Assembly: GCA_010909165.1 (NCBI GenBank)
Contig: MU008172.1
Span: 1-64,000, forward strand
DNA length: 64,000 nt
From: Anthoceros angustus
Lineage: Eukaryota > Plantae > Anthocerotophyta
Direction: 5' to 3'
Part shown: piece after piece, positions 8,251 through 24,429 of the stretch
How positions within the stretch are numbered: the first letter of the stretch is position 1
How the letters are laid out: every line of letters starts with the position of its first letter
Translations under genes and position numbers: made by a program
The notes under the pieces: model-generated
Databases searched by the model: none
Told to the model about the DNA's origin: nothing
Seen by the model: only the letters and a program-made list of their open reading frames with translations

Positions 8251-9252
8251 GGTGGTCTGAGTGCTTGGTGGAGGACTTGCTGCAAGTGCCTAAACGAGTT
8301 GCTCCCCTTGTGAATGGTTGCTGTGAAATTGCTTTGCTTTGGGTGTGTGGCAATGCCTGGAACTCCTTGAGAGGTAGACGTGAAAGACTGGAGGTTCTCA
8401 GGTGTCAAACTCATAGCAACCGCCCAAGGAAGAACTTGCTGGTGGAGGCCGACCCTGTGCAGCAGCCGTAAGGGCGAGTCAAACCAAGAAGCCCGAATCG
8501 AGGTTAGAATAGGAGGAAGAGGATGAGAAGATGAGTAGAGGATTAGAGGTGTAGGTGTTAGTGGAAGGCCACAGAGCCTAAGGGACGAATCCCAACTGCA
8601 AGTAAAAGAGCGCCCCGAGTGGAGAAGAGTGGTCTTAGAAGTAGGGACGAAATCGTGGACTGGGGTCCTCGGCGCCCGTGATAGGCTCACGCTAACAATT
8701 GTGTGGGTCGCTGTAGGTCGAGGATTGGTGATTTTTCAGCAAAGGCAAGGTGTGCTGAAGAGGGAGAGAGGGCGCCTTGCTTGTTTAGAAGGTCGAAGTT
8801 GTGTCACGCAGTAGCGATCGGCATCACTCGAACTTTCACACAAGTCTCATGGGACGAAACCCAACGCACGGGCGACAAAGTGGATAAGTGTGGCCGCTAG
8901 TGGGAGGATCTAAGCCCGGGTTTTCCACACCGTCAACCCACAACATTCCATGTTTTCTCACCAACTCAAGCAAGGCATTGTCCATGTGTCAATAAATCAA
9001 GGTGGCCCATTTCGCAATGTTAATGAGCCCCCGCCGCTACCGCAAAGCTCCGATGCATTGTGCAAGGCCCACATCAATTGGTCGATCAAGATTTCCTTCA
9101 AATGTGAATCCTACTTTGTCGGGTGGATATAGGTGAACGATGGGCGGCATTGTCGCCTCATGACTGCAGACGCCATTTGCAGAGTCCGCCTAAATCGTAC
9201 CGCCAAAGAGTCGCATCGCCTCATGGGCTTCCTCATGACCGGCCGCAGACAG

Positions 9253-9543
9253 TGCAGACAGACTGTCACTTGTTCTTGAAGAGTTTGGCTTGCTTCTAGC
9301 CCTCCATTGTGACAGAAAGCCATCCCAATGTGAGAGGAGGAGGCAAGTGTCTCATCACATTGAGAGCGAGGCTTGGAGGGTATTTATACCTCCAATAGGC
9401 TCCCTAGGAAGCTCCACAAGAAGCTCCTAGGAAGGAGCACAAGAAGCTTCCTAGTGATTAGCTTGCTAAACTAATGATACTTAATCGACACCCAACTTAG
9501 ACTAAGTGTATTAGTCTAAGTATTGGGCTTTAATACCCTTACA
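9253..9543 (-). repeat. Copia LTR copy 1 (right arm clean, left arm garbled)
   Basis: Ends ...aatacccttaca (TGTAAGGGTATT on minus) next to PPT at 9544; left limit approximate. Confidence 0.75.
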
Positions 9544-9564
9544 ACCTCCCACTTAAAGGCCAAT

Positions 9565-12174
9565 TTACCTTCAGAGAGAATGGACTATCTCATGCCCATC
9601 GTGTCCGAGCTTGTGCAAATTGTCGAGAGAGTCCCTTGGTAAGAATATCATAGGTTCGCCGGTGTGAACCTTGACAAGTTGTACCCTTGTCATCCAACAC
9701 CTCTCGAATGAAGTGATATCACATCCACATGTTTAGTCTTCGCATGAAACATCGGATTCTTTGCCAATTGATAGCACTGCTATCACAATGCAACACCGGC
9801 ATCAACCTTGATCCCCAAGTCTCCCACTAAACGAGCAAGCCATATGGCTTCCTTGCAAGCCTCGCCGCAACATACCGCGTGGTAGATAGCGAATGCACGA
9901 TCGCAAACGAGATCGCCATGAGATCGCCTCTCCAAAGGCACGTGAAGACATAACTCGATGTGGACCTCCTTTTGTCCATATCCTCGATAATCAAGATCTG
10001 GTACCCAACCACATGCATCTTCACTACCAAAACATATGCACAAAGCTTTTGTACCATTCAGACTCATAACTCCTTTTATCGCCTCCCAATGCTTCTTGCC
10101 GTGGTTTGACATAAACTCGCTAACCACTCCCACCGCAAAGGCAATGTCGTGACGTAGCAATCATTGCATACATCAAACTCCCTACGATGAGTATGGGACC
10201 TTCTCCATTTCATTTTGTCCTCCTCGTAGCTTGGGCAATCCGCGCTTGAAAGTTTCACATATGGAGGCAATGGAGTACCCAATGGCTTCCCTTCCATGTT
10301 GAAACGCTGAAGCACTCGTTAATGTATTCCGTCTGAGATAAATAAAGCACTCGATGCTTTGTAGGATGGTTTCTTTCTGCACTATAGCTCCTCGAACTCG
10401 TCATCAATGTTCTTTATTAGGAGATCATAAGATGAATCGCAGACACCGCCGCCCAAAACCCATTAGGCAATCCGTAGTTTGACAACAACCACGATCCTCT
10501 CCTCGAATGGTTCGTTTCATCCGCCCACACCATTTTGTGGAGGAGTATACGGCGCATAATTTCTTTGATTCCTTGGAATCACGTAATGACGAAAGCTAAA
10601 CATACTCGCCACCATTATCCGCCCTTAGACACTTCAATCGGTGGCTGACCGATTCTCTACAAGGGTGACAAATTTCAAACACCGCCGAACTTCATCCTTT
10701 TCCTCAAAGGATAAACCCACACCTTGCGTGAGAAATCATCTATGAAAGTGACAAATAGAGGCACCGCCTAATGATGCAGAGGCATAGGTCCACATACATC
10801 ACCGTGAACCAACTCAAGAGGTTTACTTACTTTTACCTCTTGTTCGATGTGATGATTTTGTCTGCTTCCCATATAAACAAAGGCTCACACATCGAGAGAT
10901 CGAGAAGTTAAGAACAGGATATAACCGTAACGATAAAACCTTCATTCCCTTCTCGAGACATATGTCCTAACCGCAATGCCACAAGGAAACATTTGCTGCT
11001 CGATCACATGATCTTTGACAGTTTACCAAGTGAGTACAAAGTGCCACACTTCGATCCACGAGCTAACACAAGAGAACCTTTGAGATCTTCCAAGAGTGAT
11101 CCCCAAACCAAGAAGTAAACAGATCATCCAACCGCCCCGCGCTAATCATGCTCTTGTCAACTTCGAACATGCCTAACGCCCCTTCAAAGATGAATGAAGA
11201 TCCGTTGTCAAACTTGAGTTGCACATCACACGCCCGCGATCCGCATGCATAGTTATTTCCAACGATCCTTTCCTTGTAGCATCATACGTGTTAAACCACT
11301 CTATGAGGAGTAACATGGAAAGATGCACCGAGTCAATTATCCAATTGCGTAATAAATGACTATCCACGGCCGTTAATTGTGCAAGATTCAAGTAAGAAGA
11401 GATAAGGACATCTCCCCCTCAACAGTTTAACTCTTCCAACTCGATGGTCGCCTTGTCGCCCCGCTTCTTCTCTTTTCCTTGGTCCTTTTGAACTTCTCGC
11501 ACTTCTGAAGTGACCCTTTTGTGACAATAGTGATCCACATTCTTGTTACGACTACTAGATTTGCTACGAGAAGCTTCGTCCGTTGCTTCCCTTCAGGGAC
11601 CTCCCTCTCACTATGAGGGCACCGGAACCTTGGAAGGTTCCATGTTTTTCCTGCTCACCTCCTCGCCAGCTACCTTCTACATTTACAATGGTAAGACCAC
11701 TAGGTAAGGCTTACTCGGCAAGGTATCCCAACTCTCCGTAATGTGACCAGTAAACATAGCTCTCACTAACTGGGAACGTGATACCTTGAGATGAGAGCTG
11801 GCTGAAAATGGTATTGAAATCATTCGATGATCGGACATCCTCGTCCCTTCCTTCATCTTCAAGTCCACCAATGCTTCAACCAATACACCCGAGAAGCCGC
11901 ACTTTGCTTCTCATACAGTGTCACATACCGCCACCAGAACTCGTGGTCTTATCTTTCACATTGAAGTACACGCTTTTGACAATGTTAGCATGATAGTAGA
12001 TCTAGCAAGCTCATCCAGTCCGCCACTCATCTGTCATACTATCCGTTTGACGCCTAACAACTTTATGGGCTTGATCCGCGACTAGAACATTATACACTTG
12101 TTCTTTCCGTAACGGAAGTTAGTACCATCTAACTTCTCGATATTGAACATGACGCTCGATGATGAAGACATCAT
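9565..12174 (-). pseudogene. Copia gag-pol remnant, unit 1 (gag-PR-INT-[RT core deleted]-RT tail-RNase H)
   Basis: ORF pieces 9783-10160, 10076-10315, 11683-11883; gag start atgatgtcttcatcatcg at 12174; many frameshifts. Confidence 0.85.
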
Positions 12175-22771: not shown

Positions 22772-22978
22772 GACTCAAAATCGTCTGATAAAACACTCGA
22801 CTCGACTTGTCGGGAAAGTCAAAGAAGAAAGCGATCACCCGTCACGGTCCGTGTATTTTCTTTATTATTTATTCCACGGTAATCCGCCTCGACGAATTTT
22901 CGCCACCGCCGGCGTTTGCGCCCTCAATTGTCTTTGCCGCGCGTCGACTGCTTACGCGTCGCGGCTGTCGACCATCGC

Positions 22979-23128
22979 GCCGCCGCCGCCGCCGCCGCCG
23001 CCGCCGCCGCCGCCGCCGCCGCCGCCGCCGCCGCCGCCGCCGCCGCCGCCGCCGCCGCCGCCGCCGCCGCCGCCGCCGCCGCCGCCGCCGCCGCCGCCGC
23101 CGCCGCCGCCGCCGCCGCCGCCGCCGCC
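22979..23128. repeat. (GCC)50 trinucleotide run
   Basis: Perfect gcc repeat; sits where units 1 and 2 have a complex GC-rich segment. Confidence 0.95.
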
Positions 23129-24429
23129 CAGCAGGCTTGCAGGCGCGCGGGCTTGCAGTCAGCGTCGAACGGTGCACCGCCAAGAGTCGCATCGCTCATG
23201 GGCTTCGGATCGCCACCGCTTGGAATGAGACGGATCGTGTGGTCTTACCGTGTCTCGTAGTGTGGGAACTCCATGGTGATCGGTGTATCCCCCACTCGCG
23301 TGCAGGTTAAATGCTAGCGGAGATGGGAGGTTGAAGTCCTCAAGGCCACCACCGCCATGTTCATGCCATTTCCCTCATGTTGCCGACCACCTTAGTGACT
23401 TAGTGCGCCAACCATGTGCGGTCACCTAATTGGGTCGAGTATGGAAGGCGTCGGGTTACTGGACGAGGACCATCCGGTTGCACTGGACTGGTTTCTTCGC
23501 CACGTTGTTGAAATGACTTGCACCAAGGAAAATTGGTCCATGGTAGAAGCCATCCAAGACTTCCCGCGTGATCGTGCGTGATCTGCCGATAAGATTTGAG
23601 TGAAGTTGTGATGACATGTGATAAATGATCTGCCTTTCAAATAACCCTACACAAAACCCCATGCACCCGCTTCCCCATCTCATGCGAATAGAGCGGTGGT
23701 CATAGTACACCAATGGTCACTATGGTCTCATACTAGATTTGAAGTGTGAGAGGAAATCTTTGGTTCTTGGTGGTTGCCAAGTAGCCTGAGCGAGTTGAGG
23801 GCGTGTGTCGGAGTGGCACTCACGCGTTTCTTTGGAACTTGACGATCTGGAAGGTGGGTGAACGGGAAAGTGTATATCCGACAAAGGTGCTCCACATAAA
23901 GGCGGGAGGAGGTTGCGATCGAACGAAACGAGAGAGAGGATGGCACGTACCTCTAAAGACAATTTGAGCTCCACTTTGATGTTGAGAGAAGGCTAGAATC
24001 CCGGTCGGATGATTCTTCATCACGTGCAAGGATAACACTCGTGCCCGCTTCACCCGTGGTGGTCTCCTCTAAAACCCCGACCAAATGCTCACCTAAGTGT
24101 CGTCCTTCTCAGACGCTACTGGCAAACCCGATATCGTCCACGATCTGATGGCGCCCGCCACCGGGGCCCTGATCCAGTGTCCTCCGTCACCGGTACTCTG
24201 GGCGTCTCCCCTTCCAGTACACGGCAGCCGCCGCTACCACTACAAGCTCAGCGGGAAAAGATGGGACAGAGCACGAGGCTGCTGGCCCGAACTTCGACGC
24301 TGCCGAGGCAAAGAAGCCCGCCATCGCCACCTCGGCCAGATCCAGATCCAGCTCCAGGCGACCAAAGTCCGCAAGGGACATGTCGAGCGAGGTCAACCCT
24401 AAGCCGCCGCCGCAGTCTTCCAACACCTC

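Follow-up and report, generated by a model that had tools for sequence, protein, structure and literature searches.

The first 64,000 nucleotides of contig MU008172.1 of Anthoceros angustus (Anthocerotophyta; GenBank assembly GCA_010909165.1), which are the whole stretch of DNA analyzed here and are referred to as the window, contain at positions 8251-24151 a tandem block derived from a Ty1/copia long terminal repeat (LTR) retrotransposon that has lost its reverse transcriptase (RT). Self-BLAST and MAFFT alignments resolve this block, whose coding strand is the minus strand, into three collinear units arranged head to tail (U1, U2, and U3), and comparison of the window with itself identifies it as one large direct-repeat system, restricted to 8250-24151. 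Such a self-comparison had been recommended in an earlier reading made from the letters alone (the sequence-only reading), whose claim of three unit lengths spanning 15.9 kb is borne out by a total of 5170 + 5216 + 5515 = 15,901 nt. The units and the features that mark their limits are the following:

8251-13420, minus strand: unit U1, 5170 nt, delimited by end alignments and MAFFT
13421-18636, minus strand: unit U2, 5216 nt; compared with U1 and U3, its LTR is partly deleted or garbled in the 5' part
18637-24151, minus strand: unit U3, 5515 nt, the most complete of the three
8251-8255: left terminal redundancy GGTGG, matching GATGG at the unit end; the homology may begin at 8250
24147-24151: right terminal redundancy GATGG, with which the block ends
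18629-18641: 13-nt palindrome TCCGA-TGG-TCGGA, coinciding exactly with the U2/U3 junction, where the block opens

Both ends of the block fall at one phase of the unit, 1322 nt downstream of an LTR start. At the right border, after position 24151, ...GATCTGATGG gives way to cgcccgcc, the final letters of the block being ...CGATCTGATGG, and at the left border gtcgc is followed at 8251 by GGTGGTCTGAGTGCTTGGTGGAGG. In local alignments, the two end sequences adjoin each other at the internal junctions 13389-13439 and 18604-18655 (...CGATCCGATGG followed by TCGGAGTGCTTGGTGGAGG), which is the contiguity inside the units that the sequence-only reading had described. Moreover, G[A/G]TGG is present at both block ends, with an overlap of 3-6 nt depending on the scoring of mismatches, and the block therefore measures 3.00 units plus 3-6 nt. 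The overlap 'tgg' reported earlier is thus present, but these letters are redundant between the block's own two ends and do not constitute a microhomology between block and target. For a unit of 5.2 kb, two random truncations would agree in phase to within about 5 nt with a chance of approximately 0.2%. The 13-nt palindrome on the U2/U3 junction has a counterpart with two mismatches at the U1/U2 junction (13413-13425); it could be a breakage site, and taken alone it is not statistically remarkable.

Internal regions in the block alternate with single LTRs shared between neighbors, as seen in the alignment and in the count of the motif that joins the polypurine tract (PPT) to the LTR start. This motif, TTTAAGTGGGAGGTTGTA on the minus strand, occurs exactly once in each unit (9540-9557, 14677-14694, and 19955-19972; 0.01 matches expected by chance), in agreement with the claim of one LTR per unit. 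An outer LTR was not found in the block, where three LTR starts serve three internal regions, nor does either border show a demonstrable LTR terminus, a point on which the sequence-only reading was right. Its description of a circularly permuted trimer likewise stands, given the integer number of units, the same-phase ends, and the permutation relative to a normal LTR element. However, the trimer is not 'exact', since the units are only 79-81% identical in pairs and differ in length.

Within the window, similarity searches detected neither unit-like sequence nor a partial LTR in the flanks, and self-BLAST found no further copia units in the 8 kb on the left side or the 40 kb on the right. Continuation of the copia leader into the flanks, which the sequence-only reading had named as an outcome that would speak against it, is therefore not observed. 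The flanks have no second copy, no LTR pair, and no inverted termini in the window. In particular, the left flank (1-8250), which had been taken for a Gypsy LTR, yields no Pfam match in 25 pieces of open reading frames (ORFs) and has no LTR partner in the window, so that this assignment is not confirmed by these searches; the flank is purine-rich on the plus strand. No 5-bp target-site duplication was found around the block, the outside letters GTCGC and CGCCC having only CGC in common. This CGC lies directly outside both ends (8248-8250 and 24152-24154; chance 1/64) and is the sole repeat from flank to flank. It could be a 3-bp duplication, a microhomology used in end joining, or a coincidence, and both junctions lie in a CG-rich, error-prone context.

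The identity of the element was established from translations in the true frames, which are interrupted every 30-60 codons, and from comparison with related copia elements in public assemblies, namely L003 and L004 (ENA ERZ26858887), which have an intact RT, together with L001 and L002. The features of U3 that are used below are as follows:

21996-22774, minus strand: gag region, with an ATGATG start at about 22770, KLDGTNF, and a CCHC-like knuckle at about 22140
21016-21441, minus strand: pieces of the integrase core (LELVHSDVCGPMP, YFVTFIDDFT, LRADNGGEY, and TPPQNGVAERMN)
20766-20771, minus strand: RT-deletion junction, where L003 nt 660 abuts nt 1826
20007-20195, minus strand: C-terminal end of RNase H (..KYHFIREVLDDKRVQLVKVHTKNPADILTKGL..), which is the end of pol
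19955-19972, minus strand: PPT and LTR start, TTTAAGTGGGAGG followed by TTGTA; the LTR TGTAAGGG runs from 19958
19589-19958, minus strand: 5'-terminal 370 nt of the LTR, which form a strong imperfect palindrome; the TATA-like GGTATAAACAG is near its center
23724-23735, minus strand: best site resembling an initiator-Met primer-binding site (PBS), TAGTATGAGACC, with three mismatches; alone not significant
20833-21073, minus strand: local tandem duplication of about 120 nt in the integrase region, in U3 only, seen in the alignment and in overlapping L003 matches
22978-23128: perfect (CGC)50 microsatellite, in U3 only, detected with TRF

The order of motifs on the minus strand is that of gag (KLDGTNF and a CCHC-like knuckle), protease (IIDS), integrase core, and RNase H (DYAGD and ...KYHFIREVLDDKRVQLVKVHTKNPADILTKGL). 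Pfam gave no match for 20 long minus-strand ORF pieces, and shorter true-frame pieces were used instead. With these, the gag pieces match weakly to copia-type families (Retrotran_gag_2, 0.074; gag_3, 0.22), and these as well as the integrase matches (rve, 4.7e-5; rve_3, 1.4e-4) remain under the gathering scores because the reading frames are broken, the best intact integrase piece being that of U2 (15726-15902). The RNase H end has 146 homologues with up to 90% identity, some of them named Ty1/Copia family ribonuclease HI or Retrovirus-related Pol polyprotein. In the largely intact L003, Pfam identifies gag_pre-integrs, rve, SH3_retrovirus (aa 208-280), and RVT_2 (aa 392-636). In BLASTN comparisons, all three units align only to nt 1-660 and nt 1826-2587 of this element, and about 1.17 kb, comprising the SH3-like domain and some 215 of the 244 RVT_2 positions, is absent from every unit. 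The same deletion junction is found at about 15446-15480 in U2 and at 10349-10451 in U1, and RT motifs (YxDD and GLKQ) were not detected in any frame of the block. The units are thus a non-autonomous Ty1/copia derivative that has lost the integrase C-terminus and the reverse transcriptase, and the deletion, being identical in all of them, is older than the triplication.

The start of the LTR is marked by the PPT and a following TG (TTTAAGTGGGAGG, then TTGTAAGGG), a motif kept in L002, L003, and L004. Three positions in U3 are candidates for its 3' end. The first, at 19574, gives an LTR of 385 nt (TGTA...TACA followed by TGG) with a TATA-like box and places the break of the block in a 'leader' of 2.3 kb; the second, at 18639, gives about 1.32 kb and ends in ..GACCA within 3 nt of the break; and the third, at 23740, gives about 1.73 kb and ends in ..CTTCA, followed at 23735-23724 by the PBS-like TAGTATGAGACC. 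The latter belongs to a stretch of about 55 nt that is conserved in U1, U2, and U3 (18225-18236 is the site in U2), and L004 carries the canonical initiator-Met site TGGTATCAGAGC immediately after its LTR. In the units, no canonical initiator-Met PBS was found at up to two mismatches, and matches with three or four mismatches occur at chance level. ARAGORN detected no tRNA gene.

Additional information on the extent of the LTR comes from the sole public run found, which consists of unitigs of 80-120 nt, too short to bridge a junction. Over 8251-8750 and over the LTR start, unitig depth, which is not to be read as copy number, is about four times that of the coding part, and this hints that the LTR extends as far as the break or beyond it. 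In this run, both U1 and the left flank behave as high-copy sequence, with a depth of up to about 11,000 at 7961-8157. On balance, a long LTR that spans the break, which would lie about 1.32 kb from the LTR start, is slightly favored. The location of the break in the 'leader', as proposed in the sequence-only reading, holds only for the 385-nt LTR, and there is weak evidence for the longer LTR across the break. None of these models places a demonstrable LTR terminus at a block end. The palindrome formed by the first 370 nt of the U3 LTR has a predicted DNA fold of -84.7 kcal/mol (z = -9.0) and exact 23-nt arms (19696-19718 and 19823-19845), and it is partly lost in U2, where about 70 nt are missing.

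The overall identity of 79-81% between units (MAFFT) comprises 88-95% in coding and 50-80% in non-coding parts, and the three pairwise values are about equal (0.79-0.81). These star-like distances are as expected if the units were made together. The pattern of the differences is peculiar when set against five control repeat pairs from the same window. The ratio of gap events to mismatches is about 1:3 in the block versus 1:13 to 1:80 in the controls, and isolated mismatches, i.e., those with three identical columns on each side, account for 3-5% in the block versus the 28-35% expected if the changes were independent, whereas the five controls fit their own expectation. The Illumina-assembled relative L001 provides a further control on the same gene, with the behavior of natural divergence: with the column-wise two-of-three state of the units as the counting reference, its isolated fraction against them is 0.31 observed and 0.32 expected, with transitions in 38 of 55 changes and third codon positions in 19 of 28. 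Between the units themselves, differences are gathered in 108 small patches per 2.8 kb, many consisting of swaps of adjacent letters and small indels, and 55 of the 108 differ in all three units, so that patch positions are shared. A variable column is touched by CG in 66%, by CHG in 80%, and by AT in 23% of cases, compared with 35% overall. Isolated differences are few and almost all transitions, and divergence in clean context is about 0.2% per unit.

An explanation by old, natural divergence between the units was rejected, since the pattern fails the isolated-mismatch and gap controls as well as the L001 control. We read most of the unit divergence as base-calling or consensus noise of long reads at methylated CG and CHG sites in a silenced repeat. 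Beneath this noise the copies are probably near-identical, and the block would be silenced and young, its probable youth following from the clean-context divergence. If the differences are noise, junction letters and small features are uncertain by a few bases. Moreover, the apparent age or 'decay' of methylated repeats in this assembly would be largely an artefact, and the dating of transposons and arrays, as well as calls of intactness, would not be trustworthy in it without re-basecalling.

Some differences between units are larger. At the position of the (CGC)50 microsatellite of U3, the alignment shows about 300 nt of complex GC-rich sequence in U1 and U2. The microsatellite represents either a very recent expansion or an artefact of the base caller or consensus over a GC-rich methylated stretch; a flawless run of 150 nt is odd amid an error of about 7% per unit. 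The two copies of the 120-nt duplication in U3 differ from each other by noisy patches like those found between units. These larger differences, together with the loss of about 70 nt in the U2 LTR, are either real changes made after insertion or further assembly errors.

The simplest route to such a block would be a circular or concatemeric intermediate followed by end joining. The interpretation that we prefer, with a probability of about 0.45, is that an integer circular or concatemeric multimer of the unit was broken at one place and end-joined into the chromosome without integrase. The same-phase ends argue for an integer multimer of this kind and for non-integrase end joining, and the lack of an LTR terminus together with the lack of a 5-bp duplication makes the insertion of a linear cDNA by integrase unlikely. 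On the same two grounds, capture without integrase, as already suggested in the sequence-only reading, appears plausible. The sequence of events would start with an extrachromosomal circle or concatemer of whole units, which would break at one site coinciding with the 13-nt palindrome and would then be joined into a chromosomal break by end joining with no involvement of integrase. The repeated letters at both ends might, speculatively, be the fill-in of a staggered break.

Two sources may be considered for this intermediate. A multimerized circle with a single LTR (1-LTR circle) may serve, and at least as likely would be a circle of three units that homologous recombination looped out of a tandem array already present. 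Tandem arrays are known to give rise to circles with integer multiples of their repeat unit. A circle excised in this manner would consist of whole units of the array and could carry pre-existing differences between them. Sequence features of the block would look alike for both sources and cannot tell one from the other.

Several observations weigh against the preferred interpretation. Neither junction is spanned by a read or by an independent assembly, the one public run consisting of short unitigs, and, with no empty site for comparison, the block may be the rearranged leftover of an array formed in place rather than an insertion. The non-coding part of the units is scrambled far beyond what CG density alone explains, and, with errors concentrated in the block, the letters at its junctions may be wrong, as may even the number of copies. 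To these are added the larger differences between units, i.e., the loss of about 70 nt in the U2 LTR and the 120-nt duplication and (CGC)50 in U3. Finally, the LTR end in ..GACCA, at most 3 nt from the break, would alter the anatomy of the block. 

Among the alternatives, the one that survives best, although it is rather unlikely, is an assembly artefact: a mis-join or a chimeric long read in a lightly polished contig would have produced the block or one of its junctions, so that the locus would not exist as drawn. The chimeric read could come from a linearized circle or from a piece of a longer array. Error close to that of raw reads in the block (about 20% in pairs, indel-rich, and unit-specific), while the genes of the window are clean, is what such an artefact predicts, and the lack of read support for the junctions is also in keeping with it. 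However, a double chimera whose two junctions fall at the same phase could arise only from a molecule that really is circular or tandem, the clustering of errors at CG and CHG is the pattern of genuine methylated repeats, and the flanks extend over 8 kb and 40 kb.

The sequence-only reading had favored a specific route, in which a 1-LTR circle formed as a by-product of reverse transcription is multimerized by rolling-circle copying and then captured through microhomology-mediated end joining. This route predicts a single LTR in each unit, a whole number of units with both ends at one phase, and distances that are star-like. 1-LTR circles are, moreover, the main extrachromosomal form of some LTR elements, dominating their extrachromosomal DNA although they rarely integrate (PMC12951756), and they have been discussed as a source of tandems (PMC11899658). 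Nevertheless, an element without RT would require a helper, rolling-circle copying of a single template does not predict large indels specific to one unit, and the 'tgg' overlap that was to represent the microhomology links the two ends of the block to each other rather than the block to its target. No feature ties the intermediate to a 1-LTR circle, since the same product would result if the circle had been cut out of an array already present, and rolling-circle multimerization would be one of several ways to arrive at three units. This part of the earlier proposal is thus not upheld, and the complete route is quite unlikely.

It is less probable still that the block is what remains of a longer array formed in situ and cut twice at a palindromic hot spot by two insertions or rearrangements. 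The position of TCCGA-TGG-TCGGA exactly on the junction would suit such a hot spot, and the 5-letter repeat at both block ends resembles a target-site duplication of array sequence. However, the flank ends are not TG/CA termini, and neither LTR partners nor inverted termini for them occur in the window. Furthermore, there are no more copia units within 8 kb on the left and 40 kb on the right, where the flank reaches ordinary genes encoding leucine-rich repeat (LRR) and pentatricopeptide repeat (PPR) proteins.

An ordinary LTR-bounded tandem, (LTR-int)n-LTR, arising through unequal recombination between LTRs or from one tandem insertion and stripped of its outer parts by unrelated deletions, is highly improbable: such structures are common in plants (PMC11899658), but two independent deletions would have had to end within about 5 nt of one phase, at the chance of 0.2% given above, and no partial LTR is left in either flank. 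Other candidates were rejected outright. Integrase insertion of a linear multimer is contradicted by the lack of LTR ends and target-site duplication, and a retrocopy of a read-through transcript made by a long interspersed nuclear element by the lack of poly(A) at 8250. A self-nested 'double insertion' would give unequal periods and extra LTRs, and in-situ triplication of one normal element would leave LTR parts as flanks, which they are not.

The block can be compared with several known systems. Plant tandem LTR-retrotransposon structures, surveyed with IDENTAM (Morales-Diaz et al. 2025), start and end with complete LTRs, are mostly gypsy, and in many cases are flanked by a 5-bp target-site duplication that indicates insertion by integrase; their origin is debated, with the 1-LTR-circle route among the candidates (PMC11899658). 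As in these tandems, the block alternates internal regions with single shared LTRs in a plant genome. Unlike them, it is an RT-deleted copia element with neither an outer LTR nor a duplication in the flanks, and its borders share one internal position. This failure to be LTR-bounded and flanked by a duplication is what makes the block informative. In yeast, multimeric Ty1 arrays, reportedly described by Weinstock et al. in 1990 and Sharon et al. in 1994, are said to consist of head-to-tail units with one LTR between them and to arise without normal integration. They reportedly form through homologous recombination involving a resident element or LTR, and they remain LTR-bounded. The block resembles these arrays in its head-to-tail units and single intervening LTRs, whereas its ends are non-homologous joints at a non-terminal position.

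A route through circles has also been proposed for the heterochromatic Bari1 cluster of Drosophila, where aberrant rolling-circle copying would have been followed by reintegration into another element (summarized in PMC9659126). Bari1 differs from the block in being a DNA transposon with about 80 copies, and the evidence for its route is also indirect. Satellites and macrosatellites derived from LTR retrotransposons, as well as extrachromosomal circular DNA (eccDNA) from tandem repeats, are also known (PMC7004042; Cassandra arrays, PMC7215508). The block shares with them the head-to-tail amplification of retroelement sequence, but most of these satellites repeat a fragment of the LTR or untranslated region, while here the unit is a whole RT-less element, present in three copies with both borders visible. 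At this one locus, the shared-LTR architecture of known tandems is combined with same-phase, non-terminal borders that set the block apart.

The origin of tandem LTR-retrotransposon structures is an open question, for which unequal LTR recombination, tandem cDNA, and circle-derived products have been considered, and the arrays described so far do not discriminate between these routes because they are LTR-bounded. Borders of a block at one non-terminal position are predicted by a circular or concatemeric intermediate and not by LTR recombination. We put forward, as a possibility that is itself doubtful, that the locus is a heritable record of the direct conversion of an extrachromosomal retrotransposon circle into a tandem array, in which an integer multimer of a copia circle was opened at the palindrome inside the LTR and ligated without integrase. 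If true, this would point to a general route of amplification from circle to array that acts on genes and transposons alike. If confirmed, the block would be a rare fossil of an event leading from eccDNA to the chromosome and a plausible seed of a retroelement macrosatellite.

The surroundings of the block on its right side comprise a fragment of another element, listed here, and farther on the ordinary LRR and PPR genes:

24842-25153, minus strand: fragment of a different copia-type pol (protease beta-barrel), outside the block; Pfam Pol_BBD, 8.1e-8

This fragment shares the orientation of the block, from whose right end it is separated by 690 nt, but has no nucleotide similarity to the units, and the left flank does not carry on its pol sequence. 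AT-rich tandem repeats follow at 25656-26260 (97 nt in 2.4 copies and 175 nt in 1.9 copies). Exact-protein look-ups of ORFs of the window, two of them at or across block junctions, matched no record. Genic DNA is clean, with an LRR ORF of 503 aa at 28465-29976 on the plus strand and an intact PPR ORF of 771 aa with an E motif at 43202-45517 on the minus strand, and the PPR gene holds an internal repeat of 312 nt (44029-44866).

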